Assembly (NCBI RefSeq): GCF_902459465.1
Contig: NC_047069.1
Span: 17,112,001-17,176,000 of the forward strand
DNA: 64,000 nucleotides
DNA from: Asterias rubens
Taxonomy: Eukaryota
Reading direction: 5' to 3'
Shown piece by piece: positions 23,870 to 39,504 of this stretch. Position numbers and translations under genes: made by a program. Under the pieces are notes generated by a model, which worked only from the letters and a program-made list of their open reading frames with translations, did not search any database and was not told the origin of the DNA. Each line of letters opens with the position of its first letter. The first letter of the stretch is position 1.

Positions 23870-25790
23870 TCACTTGCAAACAAATCTGTTGAATAGTCTC
23901 ATTATATCGTAGGCTGCGCGCTGACTGGTTGCTATTTTTTCATGCAGATTGACTTTACTTTGTTGGACATTTGATTTTGATTTTTCTTGAGTATGATATT
24001 GAAGGTTGGCAACGGTACCTTCTTGAACAGTTTCAGTTGTAATTTCGTTTAGTTCTAACACAGTTTTTAAATTATCTATCAACGTTGCCTCTTGAAAGTC
24101 TACACGTGCCTAGATTTATTAAACAATCTATGGTCTCCTTTGGAGTTAAGAACCTTCTTGTGATACTTGAGTTGTGCAATTAGTGCAGCCTTTCTTTTTT
24201 GTGTACTCAGTGACTCCAATTTTCTTGCTACCTCATCCAACTTCCATACTCCACCAAACTCAACAATGGCATCAGTTGCCGCAACTTTATTAACTATACT
24301 TCTTTGCTCTTGTTTGTCTTTTTTAGACTGTTTTACCCTTAGGGATTCTAAGTGTTGTTGTTTGAGTATATCCTTCCTTATTAGGTACTGTGCTCTTATT
24401 GAGCCGTAGCGATGCCTGGCCTTATCCAACAGAGCACTCTTCTCTACAGGATCCATTTGGTCCAGCCACTCACTTGGTTTATTGTTAAGCCATAGAATGT
24501 AAATTTCATATGCATGGGACGATGCAGCTGGCTTCAGTCTGACTAATATATCTAAAATGGCGAAATCCCGCTCTGACACTGTGTTGGTGGTTGGTACATT
24601 CTTGGCAGATTCTTGCTGAGTTGGGGTTGGGTTAAAGTACTTTCCACCCTCGAGCTGGTCTTTCGCTTGTCGCTCAAGAATTAAAACAATCCCTGTCAGT
24701 ACCATTTCTAGTGCAACTTGGGTGTAAGTTTGGAAGTCGGCATCTTGCTGGTCTGCAAAGAGTTCATTATACATTGCGTCTTTATGGATATCCATATAAC
24801 GAAATAGCGGTTCTTGTTCTAAAAGTGGCGTAGCATCTACTGACCATTTTTTTTTTAGAGTTTCTAACATGTGTGAAAGTGGCCCATTCAAATCCAAGAT
24901 GCTGGCGGTGCCTTCTACCAAGCGCCAGAATGGTCCTGTGACCACCTTATCCACCATCCCGAGAGCGCGTATGTGGGACAAGTAAATCTTCTGCTGAATA
25001 TCGTAAAGAACTGCTTTCAATAGATTGTTGGGGTCTGGCAGGGAAGAGATAAAATCAAAAATGTGGTGCCTATGAAAATATGTGGCAGCTGCATCTTAAA
25101 AAAGAATGTTAAAGCGGTTGGCTCTGTATGACACAAGATAATTGTTAATTGATAACTCTTCAAGATATCTCAGCCAATGAGATGAAACTCCGGACATGTC
25201 ACAACCACGCTCAGTCAATGCCTTTGCAGTTGTGCGGATGAGTCTTGCAGCGCCACTCTCTGACCCAAATGCGAAGGGGTTTTTGCCTGCTGCGATTATG
25301 TCTGCTTCGTTGATTTTGAGCACTTTGTCAGACTCGGTGGCGAAATTGACCAACAAATGCATCTTGCAAAAATAATTGCCCATATCGGCAATTGCTTCCT
25401 GAGACTTGGTGTCCAATGACTCCCATTTATCAACAACCTTGGGAAGCAGCTGTTCCCGGAACTCTTTAACCTGCGAGTTAAATTGTTGGTTAGTGGGCCC
25501 TTGATCACCCATTGTGTTTTTTAGGGAGGTGACAAGATTTGCAATGCTTTGGGCTTTATCACTATTTGTACCAGTAACAGCTTCTGCAATGTCACCGATT
25601 ACGGATTTGAAGGCCTCCATGTATGTGTTGGCGTCACCAGAACCAACTTCAACCATCCCTATCGTCATTTGTTTTCCATCTCTCAGGGTTGTCTGGAAGC
25701 CCTGATAATGATGGTGGAACTTTGTGGTGGCATCCGAATGCAGGGTATTTCCGGTTAAGTTGGACGGATCACCCCCCCCCTCCTCCAAGC
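23870..25790 (-). pseudogene. hAT-like (CxxH) DDE transposase, interrupted by an in-frame stop at 25096-25098
   Basis: TLHSDATTK (D), NTMGDQGPTN (D), FCKMH (CxxH), NRFNILF, PTTNTVSERDF (hAT-dimerisation-like E). The frame continues through the stop as DAAATYFHRHH...PDPNNLLKAV. Confidence 0.7.
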
Positions 25791-26301
25791 ACTGGTATAT
25801 TTCTCAGGGCTATGGTATCGGCATTTCTATACGTTTGTGTACATGATCGCAAAGCTGAGAGTTCAAGCTTTCCGTTCGTATAAAAAATTTCGCAATTGAA
25901 TAATGTTTTATTTCTTTTTCAACGAGTTGAAAACATGATATTTTATGCTAGATGAGGTGGTCTGTGTGCGTGCGTGTCTTCACTTTGCAGTGGAGAGCTG
26001 AAAACCCTATATACAAGAGACAATTATCATAAATCTATTTAACTACAATTGTTATTGGAAACACAATCCATCATGTTTTTTTAATTTCTTTTTGAACATG
26101 GTCACCTGAAAACAAGTATAGGCCTCCTATACGTTCAAATTTAAACACAATTTCTGTTGAATGGCTTTTCAGAAGGAAATTTTTCTCAATTAGTTTTTAA
26201 ACAACACATTCATTTAAGCAGCTATTTCAAAGTGTTCTAATCAACATTAGGTCCAGCATTTTTGTTTTTACCAACCAACCTGTACACAGGGCCACTCTGT
26301 C

Positions 26302-28438
26302 TCAACTTTCATGAGCAATTTTAGAGCATGTATGTTTGTTGTGGCCTTTTACACCACACAAACTACAAGTAACGCTGAATTTCATCAAACGTTCACATTC
26401 CTCAAGATCTTCAATGCGGTTTTGTTTCTCCATTATTTGTTTTAAGGCAATCTCCTTATGATTAGTGCCTCGAAAAAACCAGCGTGTTACACAGTCATTC
26501 AGTTTTTCAAGTCCCTGCTGGCTGAAAAGTGCGATATTACCATTCAGTCGGATTGATTCCCCAATATGATTTGCCAGTATATGCATATAAGGAGTCGCAT
26601 CTTTGGTGGGGTATATGTTACAGAACAGTTCTAACCAAGATCTTGCACTACATTCAAATGCTTTCAAAGCAACTTCATTTTGATTAGACAAACCTGATAT
26701 TTCTGTTATCAAAAGTTTGAAGTTACTCCAAAGTTGTTTCAGACTAGGAAGTTTGGTGAATGATGTACCAGCCAAGAAGTAGTCTAAATCGATTGAATTG
26801 AGAATCCGCCAGTGCTCTGGTCCAGTGAAGTCTCTGTAGGTTAATTTACCAGATCTATCAACTATAAAACACCACTCGATGTTCATTGACTGTACAAAGG
26901 TTTCAAACTTGTCTATGTTTGGAGATTGTTTAGCATGTGCAATTCTTACTTCATTATCATACTCCCTAAGGATTGATATCAAATGCCCAACAAGTTGATC
27001 AGAGATTCTCAAAAAGAGATGCAATGTGTCTGGAACAATGCGTATTATAGGTATTGAGGTAAAAAGGGGCGGATTTGAACAATTTGTACTTGTTCTTTTT
27101 TTGCCTCGCATATTGTGTGATTGATTCAATAGTTCGAGCACCACTGGCTTGGTTTATCATTGACCACTGCTTTCTGTGGTCCCATCTATCAGATTTTGAA
27201 CAATGACACCACAGGCAGCTGTATGTTGAGCTACAAGCATCCAGTCCTGTCATAACATTCAAGAACTTCAAATCTCCACCAAGGAAAAATACAATATCAA
27301 ATACTCTACCATTGATGACAATAGTCTGCATTTCTGATACTTCACAAAGGATAGGGTTTAACGCATCTTTTAGTGACTGGTACTTTTCCCTGACTTTGAG
27401 GATTGAAAGTATGTGGTTACCTGTTACACTCTTACAGTTGGCTTCATTCATAACACTAAACACAATATTAACAACATGTATTCTCTTCCCCAAGCATGTA
27501 CCATCTCCAAACAGTTTAACTTTAATAACAGAATCTGTCATTGGGTTATTATTGGTCAGTTTATTGATCCTAGTTGTTAAACGTTCTCTCAATGATTGAA
27601 AAACACCTATGCCTCCAGGTAATTCCTGAATGTTGTAACTTGCATTGAGTTGGTTGGCATACAACTTCACTGAACGTAATTTTGGAAACTTTGCTGAAGA
27701 AAGAGCCAATTCATGGTACGTTTTGTCAGAAATACCATATCGATCTTTGAGATACAATGCCTTTTTGTCACTGATGTTCAAGGTACCTTTTCCTGTGACC
27801 ATGATGTTTATCATTTTTTTACCTTTTGTTTCAATGGAAATTCTAACAGGCTCATCTCCATCAGAACCAAAGAGTGGAAGTGCCTGCAGGATTTGCTTAA
27901 ATCCTTTCAATCTGTGCCTCCTTTGTGTTCGTTTACTAGCATTTGGTTGCAAGAACACTCCATTTTTGTTTTTCCGTTTGTTTTTGTGACTTTGAAGCTC
28001 TTTTTCAGCTTCTAATCTGAGAGATATTTGAGTCTGTAGGTCTCTTTCAAGTTTGGACTTCAACGCCCCTGGGCTTCTGAAAGTAAGTCTCAGTTTATAT
28101 GAACTTGTTCTCCACTTTGTAAGTAGTAGGTCTCTCGATTTTCCACCTGCAGATCTCTTTGGCTTTGCTTTACTGAGCATGTGCTTGGCTTTGGATTGAA
28201 GTGTCTTGAGGAGGGGTTTCACAAGTAGCTGCGGCATGTCAACATCATTTTCCATGCAAATGAACTCTAAAATTGATGTCAAATTGTCTGGTTCATTAAT
28301 TGGAGATTGTAGACCTTTAAAGAGCTCATATAACACATAGTTGTTGATAGATGCACACCATTCATTAACAGGTTTGGCAATAATGGGAAGGGGCATAAAA
28401 TCTAAAGCCAACAACACTGCAAATGTTGAAAATGCCAT
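26302..28438 (-). mobile_element. Transib/RAG1-core-like DDE transposase, copy A (one frameshift near 27081)
   Basis: Ordered motifs KVKLFGDG, LGGDLKFL, CLWC, PDTLHLFLR, TPYMHILANH and FSQQGLEKLND parallel RAG1 KESCDG, GYDEKL, CTLC, DALH, NYFHKTLAH and SEGNES. C-terminal knuckle CSLCGVKGHNKHTC. Confidence 0.75.
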
Positions 28439-28491
28439 AATGTACACTGAACTTGTCTGATTAAATTTTGGGACTTTTGTTTAAAAATCCC

Positions 28492-29875
28492 TCACAGTAC
28501 AATGTCCATGTCAGTTTTGTTTCCTGTACCCTTTACAAACGTTAACACAAACATAAAACCTCTTTGCAGACATGTTGGTTTCAATTCTTTGGAAAAAGTC
28601 TTCAACACCCTTCTCTTGTAGATATAATATGTCAATGTTGCCTTTTTTACATATGCAAAGTCACCGTTTGAATTACTGATACGGTACCACCAGCCGAACT
28701 CCAGGAAGTTTTCAAAGTTTTTAGGTTGATATTTAACACGCTTTGATGAGCAGTTGATTTTCTTCCCAATATGTCTGATTGCAGTGAACGTTTCTTCTTG
28801 AATGGGTATCTTAATAGTTACTTGGCTGTCACGCTTTCTAGCCAAGCTAAGTTTCTCCTGAATGGAAGTTATAAGGGTTGTCCTAAAAAAAAGCGAAGTG
28901 TTATCTTGTGTTGCTGTCGTATCCCTTTCAACTATCTCACCGATTTCTCTCCATTCATCAAAGGAGTGTGGCCATCCAATGTAGTGCACCAGGGACTCTG
29001 TCTTTTGTAATGTAACTCTTTGGTCGAGTATTTGAACGTCAAACAAAGTGTCTGTTGACCATCTGCGGGAATTTTTTTCCGACTGTGTTGATGCTTTACA
29101 CCCGAGTTGTTGTTCACAACGGCCAAATAGTCTAGTCTTTTGAGCTTCCGGAGCTGTGAAAACAACATAAATTATACATAAATTAATAGACATAGGCTTA
29201 TTTTAATATTGATAATCAAATTTATGTTACTTTTTAGGAAGGGTGTTTTTATTTTATTTTCAAATTCAAGTAGGCACATAATTGTACTAAATGTGAGAAG
29301 GCACGACATAGTCAGATAGGCCTAGTGACGTTAGGCTATTTCGACATGTTGTTTCCAAATTGTTTATTTATTTATTAAATTATTTGTTTATTTTTTGTGT
29401 ATGATTGCAAGGCTAAATTTCTTGCTGTCTGTGTACTGAATGGATTGTAGCTGTACTATTAATATCATATTACTATTTAGTATTAGCCCTACCTTTACAA
29501 AATGAAGGCTGCTGCTGGAGTAAGTCTTAGCCTACCAATTTGTTTTTCAGTTTTACAACGTTAGCCCAAGTTCAATTTATTAAGCCAAACAGAACAGACC
29601 TAGCACGACTCTCCGATTGAACTTGGTTGGTCGACGAATGGACTTGCCCAACCACAAAATGGTATTGTCTAATGTACACACGGAAAAATAAATTAAAAAC
29701 TTGTGTGACAGGCGTTTTTTGTTTCGCCCTGTTACAGTCATTCTTACTTGAAAAGTTACGAATTTTATCACAAAATGTTCTATATGAGTACCTTATTCTA
29801 ATAACATAAAAGTTAAGGGTCAAAGACCCTTTTTATGATTAAACTTACCTTGTAAACTTTGCCAGCGGGACCCAT
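28492..29875 (-). CDS. Two-exon chromo-barrel (Tudor-knot) protein gene (exons 29875-29849 and 29153-28492); 1-nt slip in an A7 run
   Basis: Exon 1 ATG...AAG|gtaagt and exon 2 ttcacag|CTC give MGPAGKVYK-LRKLKRLDYL. Downstream is LVHYIGWPHSFDEW (MOF/MRG15-like VHY.GW...DEW). An A8 at 29072-29078 would join the frames. Confidence 0.7.
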
Positions 29876-30444
29876 GGAAGCGACGACTGACAGTACATAC
29901 ACTTCACACGTTACACACGGACGTACACCCAAACTCTGTGTTTCCGCGCGCGCGCCTGACTGTCAGATAGTTGTTGATAACAACTTAATTGTTATTGGCT
30001 ATCAAAAGTACGGTTCTAAATATCCTCCAATCAACAAGTGCTTTAAATGACTTCAAGGGAGATTCCTTAATACATCTAATACCGCTTGAACTGTTGAAAT
30101 CGGCCGAGGGGTGGCGCTGTTTCACTTTTCTAAACAAAGCAATGCAATCAAAACGGCGGATCGCGCAGCGTAAAAAGAGCTGCTGGACTGTTTTTAAATC
30201 GCCGAAGTCCGGTTTTATTTTATATTTAATTCTTTTTAAATTTATATGATATAAACATGGATACTTTTTCAATATAACTGTGTTTGAACTGTGCAGATGA
30301 GTTCATGTGGATCGGATTATATTGGGCTTTATGTGCACAACTTGTAGAAAAGGGTTCGGCGCGTCATGTTTAAAATCATTATCAAACGTTTTGGCCGCAA
30401 CGTTTTCATATGACAATATAATTTTAACCCTTCTTTTGGATAAC

Positions 30445-30770: not shown

Positions 30771-31884
30771 AATTTGTTACCCCCTGTTTTGTTCACCTAA
30801 CTTGACTGTTTAATTCATACCATGTGTGTACTGAACACAGTGACTGGGCTCACTGAGAGGATTAGCACTATCTCTGTGTGGGTGTGCGTTTGTCTGTGAA
30901 CCCTGACTTTGGGATCTTCCATTCACAAAATGGGTAAAGCCTTTGTTAAATCCTTATACATGTACACCACTGACAACAGTGATTAATCAATGATAATGAG
31001 ACACAGTATTTCAAAAAGAACTTACTACTTGTATTTATTTCTCATTACAAAACAAGTTACAGTGTCACTTGTTAATGATACATTACATTATATACATTAT
31101 ATCCCAAAGTGCATCACTATTAATATTTATATGTTAAAAAAAGAAGCTGGAAATAAACAAAATACAACTGAATGCTAAGGTATCTCACTTGGAAAAAAAA
31201 TCTGTAAATTTCTCAAGGAAAGGGGTATTCTGATAAATAAACAGAAAACAAAACTAATTACTTTGAACACAGGAACGTTTATTGTGGCCTTCATTGTCAC
31301 AATTACTGCAAGTTATCTTGTGCTTTAGTTCACGCTTGCAACTTGGAGAAAGATATTCGATTCTATTCTGTTTGTTCATTAACTGGGTTAAACAGGCATG
31401 CAACTCTTCCGCGTTTCCGCGGAATTCCGCGTTTTTAAAAAACTGATTAGCACTAAGAAAAACATTCCGCGGTTAGCGCGATCTTAAGACAATTTACAAC
31501 AATGCATCGTAACGCATGGTCTGGCCTCTGCCGCGGCACGCAATCCATTCTACTGCATGGTCAATCTAAAGCCCACAGCAAGCAATGCATACGTTTACAC
31601 ACTGCGTGCGGTCATTAATAGCCGTGTGTACGGTCAAAGAATCTCAAACAGTGGAACGCACCCCGTGGCGCAGGCGAGTTGTGTGCTAAACCAAGTTATT
31701 ATACAGCCTTGAAATGAGTCTAAGGTCATGTCTTCGTCTGGTCCCGCTATTTTGCAATAGTATACACGTTGTGTACATGTACTGTGTGTGTGTGAGTTAG
31801 TTACCAAACGTACATGTATACTGCTGCTGTGTGCGAGTCTCACATTGCGCTACGAAACAGTCGCATCTTCAAACGTCCGTCAAA

Positions 31885-32165
31885 ATGACATCCAAAAGAA
31901 ATGATATTTTAGAGCGGGGCCGAGTGGTACCTGGCCAAATTAAAGCCATAGATAAAGGAGTAAAAAATACCTGGAAGTGGTTCTGGTTGGAAAAATAAGA
32001 CGTAGACGGTAAACTGCTCTCCGAAACCGTCCGGAAAGTGGACAAGCCAGGAATGGCATATTGTGATGTGCAAGACGGCAAGCGGGGACAAGTGGCTCTC
32101 ACCGACCATTGTAAGGCGGCAAAGCATCAGGAGTTGATTAAGTTGAGGAAAACTAACTATTGTTT
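31885..32165 (+). pseudogene. N-terminal fragment of a hAT-type transposase (zinc-finger region)
   Basis: IDKGVKNTWKWFWLEK*...VRKVDKPGMAYC...RG..AL.DH....KH; internal stop and deletion. Confidence 0.55.
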
Positions 32166-32360
32166 CCCAGGTAGTTATGAAATTTGCATAAAATTATTAT
32201 TCCACCCCCCAAAAAAAATCAAAAAAAAAAATCTGATTATTTTTTTTTTTTTTTTTTTTTGGGGGGGGGAAATAATAATTTTATTCAAATTTCATAATTA
32301 CCTGGGAAACAGTAGTTAGTTTTCCTCAACTTAATCAACTCCCAATGCTTTGCCACCTTA
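32112..32360. repeat. Fold-back inverted duplication, ~110-bp arms
   Basis: taaggcggcaaagcat..gagttgattaagttgaggaaaactaact...tcc.ccccc is mirrored by gggggggga...agttagttttcctcaacttaatcaactc..atgctttgccacctta. Confidence 0.85.
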
Positions 32361-32521
32361 GAATTACGGTGCATACATGATACATAGGCAAGGTGTTTTT
32401 CCATGTTATTTTAGTTGTATAAAACACTTCACTTTGTCTTTGCCATACATGCTAAGATTGATCCTAAGAGTACACTTTTTAGGGTACCATTGTGGGTCTC
32501 GAAAAGTTTCCTCTTTTTTTT

Positions 32522-33055
32522 TCATCGGGCAGTTGCATGCCTGGTTAAAGCATCCAAAATGTGATGATTGGTGGCTTTAAAGTACCAACTTGTTATACGA
32601 TCATTCAACTTTTCAAAAGTTTGCTGAGAAAATTTACTTAAGTTACCATGCATTTCAATTGAGCTTTTCACATGCTTTGCAAAAACATGCATATACAGAG
32701 TTACATCGTTGGAAGTGTGCACTCGATAGTAATCATCGACCCAAGATTTTGTTTTGGATCCAAATTGTTCTAGTTGTTCATGATCCATATCCGTTTTCAT
32801 TTCCTCTTTCAATTCTACGAATCGTGACCATAGACTTTTCAACAATTCTAGTTTTGGGTGATCTCTGCCATAAAAATTGTCTAGACATATAGCTTTCTGT
32901 ATCTTTTCATGTTGTAGCATTTGTTTCCTCAGAAATGTCAACCTAAGAACGGTTTTTAATTCCACTGGTACAGTGCTAAAAAGCCATGCAAGCACAGACC
33001 ACAGGATGTCAGTGGGGGATCTCGAGATAAACGTTTGCCTTATGGGTGAAACCAT
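32522..33055 (-). pseudogene. Transib/RAG1-core-like transposase, C-terminal fragment (copy C)
   Basis: TLYMHVFAKH, FSQQTFEKLND, FKATNH. Confidence 0.7.
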
Positions 33056-33771: not shown

Positions 33772-35956
33772 TCAATCCAGGGCTCCTTTCTGTAGTAAAA
33801 GAGGAACATTTTGGCTTACAGAGCAAGATGGCTTGTAATGTCCTTCATTTCCACACTTAGTACAGTGTGCTGTGTTTGACTTTCTATGACAAGATGGGTA
33901 CAGATAAACAATTCTGTTGGCCTTTTGAATGATCTGTTCCAGGGCTTGTAAGTTTGATATTTTGTGATTTGAGCCTCGAAAATAACTCTTTGTAATCTGG
34001 TCATTCAGTTTTTCAAAACTCTGTTGTGAAAATCGGTTCAGGGAGCCATGGTTTGTTAGCACTGCAGCAACATGTTTTACCATGACATGCATATAATATG
34101 TGATGTCCCTTTTCTGGTAAACAGTGGAATATAACTTAACCCATGCTTTTGCTTCGTTCTGAAATTTCAAAATTCCATTTACATCCAAGTCCTGTTTCAT
34201 TTGCTCCATTAATTTAGGAAAGTCATGCCATAATTTTCAATGTCACTCAGCTTTTTATGCCATGGCATGAGGTTTTTTAGGTTGATTTGGAATTGAATTG
34301 TTTTATGTTCAGGACCTGTGAAATCTCGATATTCAAGCAATCCGGTTTTGTCGGTAAAGCAGGTCCATTTAATACCAATGCCGGTGATGAATAATTCAAA
34401 CTTTGCAAGATTCTGCTGCTGCTTGTCATTAGTTTTAGAATTTTTGATTATATTATCCTGGGTCTTCAATTCGAGAATTAATTTTCGAATGAGCTGATCT
34501 GAAATTCGAAGATATAAATGAAGTGTATCCATAACAACATTGCTGTAGTCAATAGAGAACATCGGTTGGTTAACACAAGCAAAGAACTTTAATCTGCTTT
34601 TACCAGGCATCTTTGCAAGTTTGCGGGTTTCTTCCAAACTTCTTAATTGACAATCAGCTTCCACATCAAACAACAGTATTTACTTGAACAAGCACCAATT
34701 CCCATCATTTCATTCATAAATTTTAAATCTGCACAAAAGCAAAACTGAAGAGTCAATGTTATCGCCTTAAAATCAAATGTATTTGTACTGGAAATGAAAT
34801 TTATTGTATCATCAAGTACAGGTTTCAGCAGATGGTATTTTTCTGGACATGTTGTGATGGCTAGTACGTGATCAGTTGAAACAAAGTTTCCAATTATAAC
34901 CACAAATCCAATGTTGGTGACTTTTAGTCGTTTCCCACAGGTAGTTCCATCCCCAGTTATTTTTACTTTGACAATGTCTTTGTCTTTCAGTGACAGTTCT
35001 TGGTGCAAAGCCTGCATATGCTCCAGTGCCAAAAAGAGCTTGTCCTCCAACCTCTCTGTCACGGCATTTGACTCTTCAAGTTTTTGAACTTTAAACATTG
35101 AATTTATTGCTTTGGCTCTCGTCTGTATTGACAACAAGGGTGGCATCAACCCATTGCTTTCCAATGCATATTCACGATAAGTCACATCGGGAACACAGTG
35201 TCTGTCTTTCAAAAACAATGACTTATCAACAGACAATTTAGTGTGCTCACATTCATTTTCAATTGAGCCGGCCCTGTGTATATTTCCGTACTTGTCTCCA
35301 AGAACTAGGTGTTTAGGAAGAAATCCTTCCTGGAGAAGAAAATCCCATGTAACATTCACTTCATTTTGTAACTGCTGTTTTTGTTTGGATTTCCATTGCC
35401 TTGAATACGTTCCCTTAGATTTCACACTACGCTTTGTTCCTACCCTCCTCTTAATGATCCTGGAGAGCAAAGTGTGGGCTTTCTTAGTTTGTTTTTTGCA
35501 TTTCTTGGCTTCATTACTGACCTTTTTAGCATGTTCTTCCGCAATCTTCCTTTTTTTCCATTCATTTTCAATCTCATGCAGAATTTTTCTTTTTGCACCA
35601 CAAAGTTTAAGTTTATAAATTTGTTCTTTGAATGCCGACACTTGCCTGCCTCCCTGGTTTAGCACAACTCGAAATTTACCAATCAATTTCTTAAGTTTAG
35701 AACGAAGGGCATTAACTGCCCGAGTAAGATGGACATATGACAGATCAATCTTGTTGCTTGCACACAGGTTTTCTAAGACTGATTTGGCAGCTGACTCGGT
35801 GCGAAGTGCATGTCCACTAGATTTTGCTAGTTCATGAAGAGCAAAATTGCTTACTTCAATTACCCAATCATCATTTGGATTTGACAGAGCCAAGTTTTTT
35901 ATCAAAACCATTGACAGTAAAACAAACAGCACAAACCAAAACTTAACAAGTGCCAT
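33772..35956 (-). pseudogene. Transib/RAG1-core-like DDE transposase, copy B (at least two lesions)
   Basis: KVKITGDGT, CADLKFM, MDTLHLYLRISDQL, RDFTGPEH, YYMHVMVKH, FSQQSFEKLND, CTKCGNEGHYKPSC. Confidence 0.75.
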
Positions 35957-36109
35957 GTTAACTATTATCTGAGAATTTAGCAAGAGTTAGCAAAAGTTAA
36001 ATCTGGAAAACAAAGTACCAAGTTATCACATTTTACGACCCTTGTGCTATATTTGATTTGGCTAGAGTTTAAATACAATGTATGTATGTATACCTGTTAG
36101 TGTTACATG

Positions 36110-37760
36110 ACAGGTTCCCTCAAAATGTTTCAAAATGGTTCCAGTGCAGGTTTCCGCAGGTGCGATGCTTTGAAGGTGTTCGATACATTCAGGCAGTCGA
36201 AAAATTTGTCAAAAAACTCAACAAATACAACTGATGCTACAACTGATGCTACAACTGATACTACAACTGATACTACAACTGATACTACAACTGATACTAC
36301 AACTGATACTACAACTGATACTACAACTGATACTACAACTGATACTACAACTGATACTACAACTGATACTACAACTGATACTACAACTGATGCTACAACT
36401 GATGCTACAACTGATGCTACAACTGATGCTACAACTGATGCTACAACTGATACTACAACTGATACTACAACTGATACTACAACTGATACTACAACTGATA
36501 CTACAACTGATACCATGGCTTTCTTGTTGAACTGTTGGTTAAAAAGAAGTATGTAATTACAATAACTGTATATTGCCTTAAATATAAAAGGTTTTTAAAA
36601 CACACAGTTGACAATAACATTTGAAAATAGCAATTGAATGTCACTTCACCGTTATTTTTCAAGTTTAAAAGATTGGAAGAAATGCAAAGTTTGACATCAA
36701 CAAGTTTGTGATCTTGTGAACCCAAAAAATTACAACAGGACTTACACAAAGGGTCTTGGTCTAACTGTGATATCCGGAGTTCTCCCAGTTGTTGCGAGTT
36801 GTCTTGACAAGATGAGGGACGTCGCAGATGAAGAAAACATGACGGTCAGGATCGCAAGGATTGGCAGTGAAGTACGTAGCCTCTGCGGTTGCTTCTGAAG
36901 AATGCAGTCGATAAAACTTCCGGTTCGGTGATGCGCCGTCGGAAACCAGGGCACGTACCTGAAAGCCGGCCAACTCAAGGAAAACAATGGCCTCCCACAT
37001 GCATGGATACAGTTGGTCACTGCTGACGCCTGTACTCGGGTAGTATCCAACTGGTGCATGGAGTGCACTGAAAATTCCTAGAACCATGAGGGTAAGCACA
37101 TGACTGGCCACTGCCGGCTCCGACTCCCCACGACATTTCCTTTCAAAATCGGCCACCTCATTTGCTAAACTTCCCACATCAGTAAACCGAAGTACCTTTC
37201 CCGACCTCACTGAAAAGGCCAGACCCGCCTTGACTTTCATCTCATCAAACAGCAATGAAACATTCCTCTCATGAACCGGGCAAGACAAAATATAGTTATC
37301 TTGCACAACCCTGTTGAGCATCGCTGCATTAAACCCGGTTGTTGGATCGGCAAAGTGGGTATATGGATGCAGTATGCTTGGATGAGGCAACTTCAAAAAC
37401 CCACTCTGCCGAAGAAGATTAAAGAAGTTGAAGATTTACTTTGAAGGGCAATGCACCAACGTATGATTGCTGGGTGCCAGCAGATCTGCTGGCCCTTCGC
37501 AATGGCTTCTTTTTGTTGTTCCCACAACAAATCAGCTGCTGACCCCTTCTCAATGGTGTTTCCGAGAACTTCTTCACACTCAGCAAAGGTTCACTTTAGT
37601 TGGTCATTCTGCTCGTCAGAGACACAAAACGCCTCTCTTGTCATCAGCTCCGAGACTTTCTCCTGAAGCAGAACCCCACGACACTTTAAATTTCTTTTTT
37701 CCTTCTGCAGGAGTTACACCTTTTCCTGCAGCTGTCTTGACGTCAGTCGGATATTTGGCG
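36110..37760 (-). pseudogene. P-element/THAP9-type transposase remnant (central and partial C-terminal)
   Basis: LLWEQQK, WHPAIIR, LFDEMKVK (D), LVSDGASPNRKFY (D), CDVPHLVKTTRNN, FFDCLN. Confidence 0.85.
36228..36513. repeat. 12-bp tandem repeat caactgat(a/g)cta, ~24 copies
   Basis: Direct reading; translates to (TTDT)n on + and (SVVV)n on -. Confidence 0.95.
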
Positions 37761-38896: not shown

Positions 38897-39504
38897 TTAC
38901 CAGAGTGGGTCACATGTTTCAAATGAATGGCTGGATGCAGCAGGTTTTAGTCTCACTAGAACATCAAGGATTGCGAAATCTCGCTCAGAGATTGTGTTTG
39001 TTGTAGGAACATTCTTAGCAGACTCCTGGAGGGTTGGGGTTGGTTGGAAGTATTTTCCTCCCTCAAGCTGATCTTTGGCTTGTCTTTCCAAAATCAAAAC
39101 AATACCGGTCAGAATCATTTCCAGTGCAACCTGTGTATACGTATCAAAATCAGCATCTTGTTGATCAGAGAATAGTGCTTCGTACATCTCATCTTTGTGG
39201 ATTTCTACATCGGGAAATAATGGTTCTTCTTCCATCAGAGGTGTAGCATCATTAACCCACATCTTCAACTTCTGTAGCATCTGATTAAGTGGTATATTTA
39301 GGTCAAGTATGCTGGAAGTACTTTCTGCCAAGCCCCAAAATGGACCATTAACAACTTTTCCACCATGCCCAGTGCTCTAATTTGGGCAAGGTAGATCTTT
39401 TGCTGGACATCAAACTGGACGGCTTTTAGGAGGTTGTTTGGGTCTGGCAACGTAGATATGAAGTGGCAAATATGGTGTCTGTGAAAGTAAGTGGCGGCGG
39501 CATC
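38897..39504 (-). pseudogene. Second hAT-like (CxxH family) transposase fragment, fused to PolB DNA
   Basis: Closely matches 24500-25090 (PTTNTISERDF, QAKDQLEGGKYF). Confidence 0.8.

Follow-up and report, generated by a model that had tools for sequence, protein, structure and literature searches.

A RAG1-fold transposase and a chromo-barrel protein as probable components of one two-gene transposon in Asterias rubens

We analysed a 64,000-nt stretch of the Asterias rubens genome (contig NC_047069.1, positions 17,112,001-17,176,000; hereafter the window), in which two neighbouring genes at 26302-29875 had been predicted from sequence to encode a RAG1/Transib-like transposase and a separate protein with a chromo barrel. 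We found that the two genes very probably belong to one mobile element with a RAG1-fold enzyme, and that the pair recurs in most related loci. The window element appears to be a slightly decayed, dead copy of a two-gene cut-and-paste DNA transposon, with little decay apparent. Taken as a whole, the evidence moderately favours a RAG1-fold two-gene transposon with a co-inherited chromatin-reading cofactor. Coordinates are positions within the window unless a locus is named, and both genes are read on the minus strand.

The predicted arrangement of the pair was recovered on one strand. The partner gene (28492-29168, about 225 aa; profile match E 8e-75) ends in a stop codon at 28492-28494 and is followed, after a spacer of 53 nt (28439-28491), by the transposase gene (26302-28438, about 715 aa), which opens with an ATG at 28438. 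The same 53-nt spacing was found in a 95%-identical copy from another sample. The partner open reading frame (ORF) spans 28492-29193 and contains VHYIGWPHSFDEW, and an in-frame ATG at 29168 opens the protein MLFSQLRKLKRLDY. A slip of one nucleotide in each gene had been proposed, and alignment with intact relatives agreed with this. In the partner, two reading frames meet at a C-run (29067-29069); an intact, 95% identical relative from another sample (P0010) reads straight through the window's frame change (...KKIPRRWSTD...), so one base is missing from the window gene at this point. The transposase comprises two ORFs, 26999-28447 and 26302-27144, and alignment with an intact 725-aa relative (P0002) placed one extra A in the run at 27083-27085. 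P0002 is about 62-67% identical to the window transposase (62% by BLASTP), and the tblastn alignment covers its residues 3-722.

The RAG1/Transib order of motifs and the C-terminal zinc knuckle, both part of the original prediction, were present in the window. All three residues of an RNase H-fold DDE triad were found by motif reading, with the first D at 27503-27505, the second D at 27272-27274 and the E at 26506-26508, and between them stand CxxC (27206-27217), D-x-L-H (27019-27030) and H-x4-H (26566-26583). The columns of this catalytic core (26506-27505) were invariant or nearly so in 50 relatives, and they align with the catalytic and zinc-site segments of RAG1. In the 50-member alignment D324, D401, K403, C420, C423, D482, L484, H485, H631 and H636 were invariant, as were the motifs CLWC, D-x-LH and H-ILAN-H, and E656 was nearly invariant. 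The second D stands 19 residues before CxxC and the second His 20 residues before E, which we take to be the same spacings as in mouse RAG1 (D708-C727 and H942-E962). The CCHC zinc knuckle (CX2CX4HX4C, CSLCGVKGHNKHTC) lies at 26326-26367. Its columns C705, C708, H713 and C718 were invariant among close relatives, and its matches to Pfam zf-CCHC were weak. Distant members of the family (P0080, P0107, P0093 and P0099) have a SAP or Ish1-like helix-extension-helix C-terminus, seen as weak Pfam matches, in place of the knuckle; this suggests that C-terminal nucleic-acid-binding modules are interchangeable among relatives.

Searches with the single sequence were too weak to decide the identity of the enzyme (Pfam RAG1 E 0.014, PDB RAG1 E 0.2), so profiles were needed. 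The family is large, with 6284 cluster representatives at E <= 1e-3 in a profile search. When a 50-sequence profile was compared with the PDB, only RAG1 and amphioxus RAG1L chains were matched down to E 6e-4, with a best value of 2.7e-10, and the HzTransib chains in the PDB were not reached by sequence. The match to RAG1 consisted of two collinear stretches, one over the second-D/CxxC segment and the other over the H-x4-H/E segment. An AlphaFold (AF2) model of P0002 (mean predicted local distance difference test score, pLDDT, 86.8) was then compared with known structures by Foldseek, using a set that holds no structures of other lineages of the wider assemblage to compete with RAG1/Transib. 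RAG1 was the best match (E 1e-15, target-normalised TM-score up to 0.68, 560-670 columns), followed by amphioxus BbRAG1L (E 2.5e-11) and HzTransib (E 1.6e-10), and the next fold was the P element transposase (E 9e-4). The expected match to the RAG1/Transib fold was thus found, and we regard the RAG1-type core of the transposase, an RNase H fold with a Cys2-His2 zinc site, as established. The N-terminal 230 residues are helical in the model and, in model and sequences alike, have no Cys/His cluster.

The partner protein begins with a basic motif, continues with a chromo barrel of the MRG/Eaf3 type and ends in an orphan domain. The barrel (28930-29046; LFDVQ...VHYIGWPHSFDEW), identified by profile and by Foldseek, carries F, Y, W and W at the aromatic-cage positions. 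The window ORF alone gave two weak Pfam matches, to Tudor-knot (E 0.013) and to an MSL3 chromo-like domain (E 0.046). A profile built from 19 partner sequences matched the MRG701 and Eaf3 chromo barrels at E 1e-6 and, more weakly (up to E 1e-3), MRG15, MOF, and then ARID4A and PHF20; the cage positions LY, HY, GW and EW of MRG701 align with F/Y, Y, W/Y/F and W of the partner. In an AlphaFold model (pLDDT 78.8; mostly 76-92 in the C-terminal domain) the barrel was matched by Foldseek with probability 1.0 to the chromodomains of MRG2, CDYL2 and CBX7 (TM-score 0.72-0.75). MRG and Eaf3, the closest relatives of the barrel, read H3K36 methylation. The C-terminal alpha/beta domain of about 135 aa (28495-28893; GWWYR..N.NGDF...RGF.F..FVKG.G) was conserved in 19/19 homologues and had no relative in Pfam, among PDB folds or among viral folds. 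Profile and Foldseek comparisons of the partner gave no kelch propeller or PHD match.

The aromatic cage was present in 14 of 22 families, with three partners cut by contig ends. The barrel as a whole was absent from G1/L057 and from L015, and apparently also from L068. The barrel-less partners (G1 at L026:10156-10764 (-), L015:1605-2186 (-)) kept the basic N-terminal motif and the C-terminal domain, and the latter was retained in every family. Because it was lost in two lineages, the barrel is probably a regulatory or targeting module and not the indispensable part of the partner.

The strongest evidence that the two genes belong together came from other copies. JGI metagenome records were scanned by alignment with the transposase, which gave 80 loci; their six-frame ORFs were searched with profiles of both proteins, and 83 loci were tabulated. 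The partner accompanied the transposase in 68 of these 83, so that the predicted co-occurrence in other copies was observed, within shared ends in the multi-copy families described below. It was undetected by the profile search in the remaining 15, most of which are truncated or fall in a distant clade from soil. The predicted tandem order holds for the clade of the window element, but the commonest arrangement among relatives is convergent: in 62 loci the genes lie tail to tail, 55-2100 nt apart, and six loci (the window not counted) are tandem. After copies more than 90% identical had been collapsed, 19 convergent and 6-7 tandem families were left; in all, the pair was counted in at least 26 families differing by more than 10% in protein sequence. 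The tandem layout is the same in close relatives from other samples, and the layout of neighbouring genes is the same in three ENA contigs. Named genomes with tandem pairs are those of Holothuria leucospilota (two loci) and Argopecten irradians (one locus). In the transposase tree, the tandem families from the scanned loci form one well-supported clade that includes both the window transposase and a second copy in the window; the scallop (Argopecten) pair is tandem yet falls outside this clade, and for this reason we claim no ancestral layout.

The two proteins have also diverged together. Their pairwise identities correlated with r = 0.90 across 22 families (Mantel 0/2000). Between families L034 and L055 the ratio of nonsynonymous to synonymous substitution (dN/dS) was 0.09 (partner) and 0.10 (transposase), values that indicate purifying selection on both genes. 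Between copies of one family the ratio was about 0.9, which is the usual signature of mobile elements, whose genes are selected only while they move. Judged on these comparisons of sequence, the pairing is not a matter of chance, and the partner appears to be co-inherited with the enzyme across many families.

The ends of the element were found in multi-copy relatives. One assembly (WLWD01... records) holds two such families, G1 and G2, with 7 and 11 independent insertions (examples are L026:7102-10908 for G1 and L016:7326-11120 for G2). G1 copies are 99-99.9% identical and 3807-3812 bp long, with ends CATGTCAAAAAA...TTTTTCATATG; G2 copies are 95-99.7% identical and about 3795 bp long, with ends CATATCAAAACC...GGTTTTGATATG that form a perfect 12-bp inverted repeat. 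Within each family all copies lose similarity at the same base, beyond which the flanks are unrelated, and the two genes are contained within these limits. These 3.8-kb elements, whose copies are 95-99.9% identical within a family, have therefore moved. At least ten further families (at least 12 in all) have a tip of the CATATCAAAC type, and in L003 a 14-bp inverted repeat surrounds a convergent pair within 5.9 kb. The termini of relatives are CAT...ATG, that is, of the 5'-CA...TG-3' type, in at least 12 families, with tips CATATCA or CATGTCA.

The ends of relatives are also bipartite. A second motif, G(G/A)ACATTT (in two families GTCAAAT), lies further in. Counted from the tip, it begins at position 16-19 on the transposase side (the 5' end) and at 27-29 on the partner side (the 3' end). 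Such ends were seen in L016, L003, L033, L043, L015, L022, L034, L037, L067 and L072. Four families have both ends together with a clear motif, and in these the two positions differ by 10-11 bp. If the first seven bases are taken as a heptamer, the spacers in L003 and L033 are about 11-12 and 21-22 bp. Judged by these motif positions, the asymmetry is of the one-helical-turn kind that underlies the 12/23 rule. The bipartite arrangement was not clear in the window copy.

Terminal inverted repeats enclose both genes in the multi-copy relatives, but the 5-bp target site duplication expected of a Transib was not seen, and a duplication of 1 bp is apparent instead. In 15 of the 18 independent G1 and G2 insertions the left flank ends with the base with which the right flank begins, where 4.5 such matches are expected by chance (binomial P about 3e-7 at p = 0.25). 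No duplication of 2, 3, 4 or 5 bp was found at these 18 insertions, and when models of 2-, 3- and 5-bp duplication and of a palindromic target were compared with them, only a single repeated base fitted. Several right flanks of G1 and G2 begin with CAT, the same three bases as the start of the element.

With the motif of the multi-copy relatives as a guide, candidate ends were located in the window. A generic repeat search around the element, a comparison of flanks between the window copies and L001, and an inverted-repeat search of the Holothuria locus had given no ends. The candidate 5' motif CATATGAAAAC (30402-30412 (-)), the proposed left end, is an exact match to the family motif CATRTSAAAA. 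The candidate 3' motif GTTTTCAGGTG (26103-26113 (-); reverse complement CACCTGAAAAC), the proposed right end, lies 189 nt past the transposase stop. The 5' candidate and the reverse complement of the 3' candidate agree at 9/11 bases (11/13 with two flanking bases), and the 8-mer TTTAAACA occurs in both ends, at positions 39 and 38 counted from the tip. The candidate tips are CATATG... and ...CAGGTG, and only the 3' candidate starts with CAC. The window element would then span 26103-30412, a length of 4310 bp that falls within the 3.8-5.9 kb of its relatives. In L001, the nearest relative, the 3' end is of the typical form (CATATGGAAAAC) and shows GGACA at position 27. The 1.2-kb stretch between the L001 transposase stop and this end holds direct repeats of about 100 bp (L001:2758-3565), which may be subterminal binding-site arrays.

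These results suggest how the element might work. The transposase would pair the two unequal ends, cut at the CA...TG tips and reinsert the element. The conserved C-terminal domain of the partner would bind the transposase or the end complex and would be the required part of the protein, and the chromo barrel would dock on a methylated histone tail, steering or licensing the reaction in particular chromatin. In the tandem clade, with its tiny intergenic gaps, both proteins might be made from one transcript, the second through reinitiation or an internal start. In RAG2 the propeller is the core cofactor of RAG1, and the PHD finger, a reader of H3K4me3, tunes where and how strongly RAG1 acts. 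The same picture of a core propeller and a tuning PHD finger is given in PMC10629977. By analogy, the part of the PHD finger would here be played by an unrelated protein, and the element would be a second, unrelated case of the alliance of enzyme and chromatin reader on which antibody gene rearrangement rests. For the partner itself, a role as chromatin-reading cofactor is close to evenly balanced in our judgement, tilting slightly against. It is possible, but rather doubtful, that the element represents a RAG1-fold transposase dependent on a separately encoded chromatin reader, with convergent genes and 12/23-like ends, outside the RAG1-RAG2 lineage.

Several observations weigh against a transposon with a chromatin-reading cofactor. 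Both genes of the window copy are broken, which makes this copy inactive now; its own ends are only candidates, with no target duplication visible at them. No partner stands upstream of the second transposase copy in the window (33772-35983), and a distant transposase clade, made up of soil records and four proteins, shows no partner at all. The barrel-less family G1 has at least seven insertions that are 99-99.9% identical. Since this family moved recently, histone reading cannot be essential for movement; the barrel is either dispensable for the reaction or could in principle be supplied in trans by a G2 element of the same genome. The apparent 1-bp target duplication is unlike that of any described relative and is unexplained. 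Physical contact between the two proteins, histone reading and the chemistry of cleavage are inferences; gene content, fold, catalytic motifs, conserved pairing, co-divergence, purifying selection and, in relatives, the ends and mobility were observed.

Other explanations of the pair were considered. The two genes might lie side by side by accident, with a host chromo-domain gene or another element next to a transposase insertion. The window is indeed dense with other mobile elements, and neither the earlier reading of the sequence nor a generic repeat search had found inverted repeats. The pairing, however, recurs in 68 of 83 loci from many sources, the two proteins diverge together, and multi-copy relatives have the two genes enclosed by shared ends; on these comparisons we give accident almost no chance and consider it already refuted. 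It is also conceivable that the two ORFs of the tandem clade are one gene, expressed as a barrel-transposase fusion by splicing, readthrough or reinitiation. The gaps are very short, at 53 nt for the window pair, 10 nt for L001 and about 20-30 nt for Holothuria. An acceptor-like site, TTTGCAG, stands just inside the transposase ORF, and the N-terminus of the transposase is oddly hydrophobic. Most families have the two genes on opposite strands, which makes such a fusion impossible there. The conserved C-terminus of the partner is always followed by a stop codon of its own, the N-terminal region of the transposase beyond the hydrophobic stretch shows conservation of the protein sequence, and no partner-like domain was found when longer family members were inspected for one. 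We rate a fusion in the tandem clade as very improbable.

Two further possibilities accept the element and give the partner another task. It could be a DNA-binding or architectural accessory, acting as a reader of subterminal motifs, an importer or an assembler like TnpA or the Myb-like proteins, with a barrel that binds nucleic acid or has no role in chromatin. The part that is universally retained is the C-terminal domain and not the barrel, the N-terminus is basic (R..R....NY), the second conserved end motif needs some protein to read it, and Pfam itself names the barrel family 'RNA binding activity-knot of a chromodomain'. On the other side, most families keep the four aromatic-cage positions that mark methyl-lysine binding, searches of Pfam and of PDB folds found no known DNA-binding fold in the partner, and in the RAG1 and Transib systems the reading of both end motifs falls to the transposase (PMC1131882). 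A DNA-binding accessory is unlikely on balance, and it is the most serious of these alternatives. Alternatively, the partner might serve expression or relations with the host, either by anti-silencing through MRG-type acetyltransferase complexes or as a brake on transposition. Its profile matches are to MRG/Eaf3/MSL3-type barrels, which belong to histone acetyltransferase and deacetylase complexes, and a Harbinger-derived protein pair is described as a plant anti-silencing factor (PMC5339849). Tight co-divergence and equal strength of selection suit a physical partner better, and domain searches found neither an MRG domain nor any other complex-docking domain in the partner, which leaves a host-directed role improbable. 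A cofactor that reads chromatin remains the reading that we prefer for the partner.

The prediction had also included a spliced leader for the partner gene. The features on which it rested are present in the sequence: a mini-exon with an ATG at 29875 (29849-29875 (-), encoding MGPAGKVYK), a GTAAGT donor at 29848 and an acceptor AG at 29155-29154. The predicted limits of the pair, 26302 and 29875, coincide exactly with the features found. Such a leader is unnecessary in homologues, in which the basic R..R....(N/D)Y motif stands 2-12 residues after a Met in a single ORF. In the window copy it is possible, because the mini-exon lies inside the proposed element and because the partner gene of the scallop relative has introns. 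In that relative (L085, Argopecten irradians CM084264.1, 2277-5897 and 6001-8154) the partner is annotated as multi-exon, with at least three coding pieces over 2.9 kb, directly upstream of an intact 717-aa transposase, which RefSeq models as 'uncharacterized protein isoform X1'. The scallop pair could be expressed or domesticated.

At the start of the window transposase (28381-28438 (-)) we noted a hydrophobic stretch of about 20 residues, MAFSTFAVLLALDFMPLPIIA..., that resembles a signal peptide or membrane anchor. P0002, P0005 and P0006 have such a stretch as well, keeping its character and not its sequence. It is odd for a nuclear enzyme, and might instead reflect pyrimidine-rich untranslated or intronic sequence. 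The GenBank model of P0005, 'Proline-rich transmembrane protein 1' (L002, Holothuria leucospilota CM055961.1, 10001-30464), is a chimera that joins the front of the transposase by splicing to a gene of the CD225 family some 20 kb distant; in the genome, the complete reading frame of the transposase extends to about 12225. At another locus (L004:8001-8714) the partner gene was found alone, with a G2-like terminal motif, CATATCAAAACT, about 0.8 kb past its stop (at about 9535), in the place where the transposase would be expected. This is probably an internally deleted, partner-only derivative.

Further mobile sequences surround the element. The second, divergent transposase copy, at 33772-35983 (-), is 28-43% identical to P0002 and P0006, consists of three ORF pieces (34643-35983, 34209-34673 and 33772-34209) and falls in the tandem clade on the tree. 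Upstream of it lie a tandem repeat and a P-element-like fragment, and no partner was detectable there. The repeat (36107-36556) is long, has a period of 12 nt, is open on both strands and encodes (TDTT)n or (VVSV)n. The fragment (36761-37396 (-)) comes from a P-element/THAP9-like transposase (Pfam TNP-like_RNaseH_N, E 5e-19). A third transposase fragment, at 31263-31448 and 32549-32914 (-), comprises the C-terminal third with the CCHC knuckle and is split by about 1.1 kb that holds a 124-nt near-perfect palindrome (32108-32364). Three related transposase copies thus lie in one orientation within 10 kb. ORFs of 306 and 230 aa at 24100-25788 (-) and 38897-39331 (-) had no Pfam match, and part of the 306-aa ORF recurs at 38897-39331 (...QDADF.TYTQVALEM.LTGIVLILERQAKDQLEGGKYF...). 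These repeats probably belong to another uncharacterised mobile element, on either side of the pair.

We filed the enzyme as a distinct lineage in the RAG1/Transib/Chapaev part of the CACTA-Mirage-Chapaev (CMC)-Transib assemblage. Its predicted identity as a Transib holds only in the broad sense: the canonical ends and 5-bp duplication are lacking in relatives, and one member meets the Pfam model of Chapaev. Transib proper is not established because the C(2)C/H(3-4)H signature and remote homology to RAG1 are common to the whole assemblage, to which CACTA also belongs (PMC12730594). With the Pfam RAG1 model (PF12940; cut-off 25 bits) the window piece scored 14 bits and the best relative 19.6 bits, and 8 of 50 members matched below threshold. 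The DUF1280 model (PF06918), which PMC3985635 equates with Chapaev transposases and places in one group with RAG1, was passed by one of the 50 relatives, P0047 (30.6 against 25 bits), and not by the window pieces or P0002. Membership of CACTA or Mirage was rejected, as none of the 50 members matched Transposase_21 (CACTA) or DUF1258 (Mirage).

The partnership of RAG1 with RAG2, a histone reader on which it depends, is a standing question of origin in adaptive immunity, and until now the points of comparison have been single-gene Transibs and RAG2-bearing RAGL elements. The family described here offers an independent natural experiment: the same enzyme fold, mostly the same gene geometry and unequal ends, combined with an unrelated partner and with some lineages that have no reader. 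Intact, recently active 3.8-kb copies exist, so the need for the partner, the rule of end pairing, the 1-bp duplication and any preference for chromatin can be tested, and a compact two-component transposition tool could result. If a RAG1-fold transposase that depends on a separate chromatin reader does exist outside the RAG1-RAG2 lineage, the design of enzyme, histone reader and unequal ends either arose twice or predates RAG2, and the RAG2 propeller would have a functional equivalent in the orphan C-terminal domain, as a transposase cofactor of a new kind.

Among the closest known systems are RAGL elements (RAG1L with RAG2L; ProtoRAG, 'TransibSU'), which share the RAG1-fold DDE enzyme, the zinc site and the motif spacing, and which also encode a separate second protein with a histone-tail reader. 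As in RAGL, the genes of most relatives here are convergent and a few hundred bases apart, with short inverted ends (PMC10629977, PMC4411706), and the ends are likewise unequal by about one helical turn. The elements differ in that the partner here is a chromo barrel with an orphan alpha/beta domain and not a kelch propeller with a PHD finger, and the enzyme falls below the Pfam RAG1 cut-off and lacks an N-terminal zinc domain of the RAG1 type. Relatives have CAT...ATG tips instead of CAC...GTG, the target duplication is apparently 1 bp instead of 5, and the window, Holothuria and Argopecten copies are tandem, in contrast to 62 convergent related loci. Transibs (HzTransib, Transib1-5) share the size of 3-4 kb, a transposase of about 700 aa, the fold (HzTransib E 1.6e-10) and bipartite ends, with a 12/23-like asymmetry in some families as in relatives here (PMC1131882). 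They have one gene (PMC4411706), whereas two are present here, and they have a 5-bp duplication and a CACAATG heptamer (PMC1131882), neither of which was seen in relatives. These differences do not settle the relationship, because the duplication length and tips of Transibs have been shown to be labile (preprint 10.64898/2026.08.26.747230). Chapaev and Chapaev3 elements (CMC; DUF1280) are also animal elements with C(2)C, LH and H(4)H motifs, but their duplication is 3-4 bp (TWA in Chapaev3) and their tips are invariably CAC...GTG (PMC4079192), which was not seen here, and their Cys/His-rich N-terminal 'Chapa' zinc finger (PMC4411706) has no counterpart in our sequences. No second gene of Chapaev is mentioned in the accessible literature. 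The family thus departs from canonical Transib in its target duplication, its tips and its number of genes, from RAGL in its partner and its Pfam RAG1 score, and from Chapaev in its duplication, its tips and the N-terminus of the enzyme, but these departures leave a deep relationship possible.

No published chromodomain partner of Transib, RAG-like or CMC elements was found in a literature search that did not include Repbase Reports. An accessory protein that is encoded beside the transposase and co-inherited with it, as here, is known from En/Spm (CACTA), with TnpA and TnpD, and from PIF/Harbinger, with its Myb-like protein. Those accessory proteins are DNA binders and are not known to have a chromo barrel. 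As an analogy, a methyl-lysine reader of the Royal family is coupled to a DDE recombinase, for the choice of chromatin, in chromoviruses (Ty3/gypsy), through the integrase chromodomain, and in HIV, through the PWWP domain of LEDGF, which acts with the integrase. Those readers are a fused part of the enzyme or come from the host, whereas here the reader would be supplied by a separate gene of the element itself.

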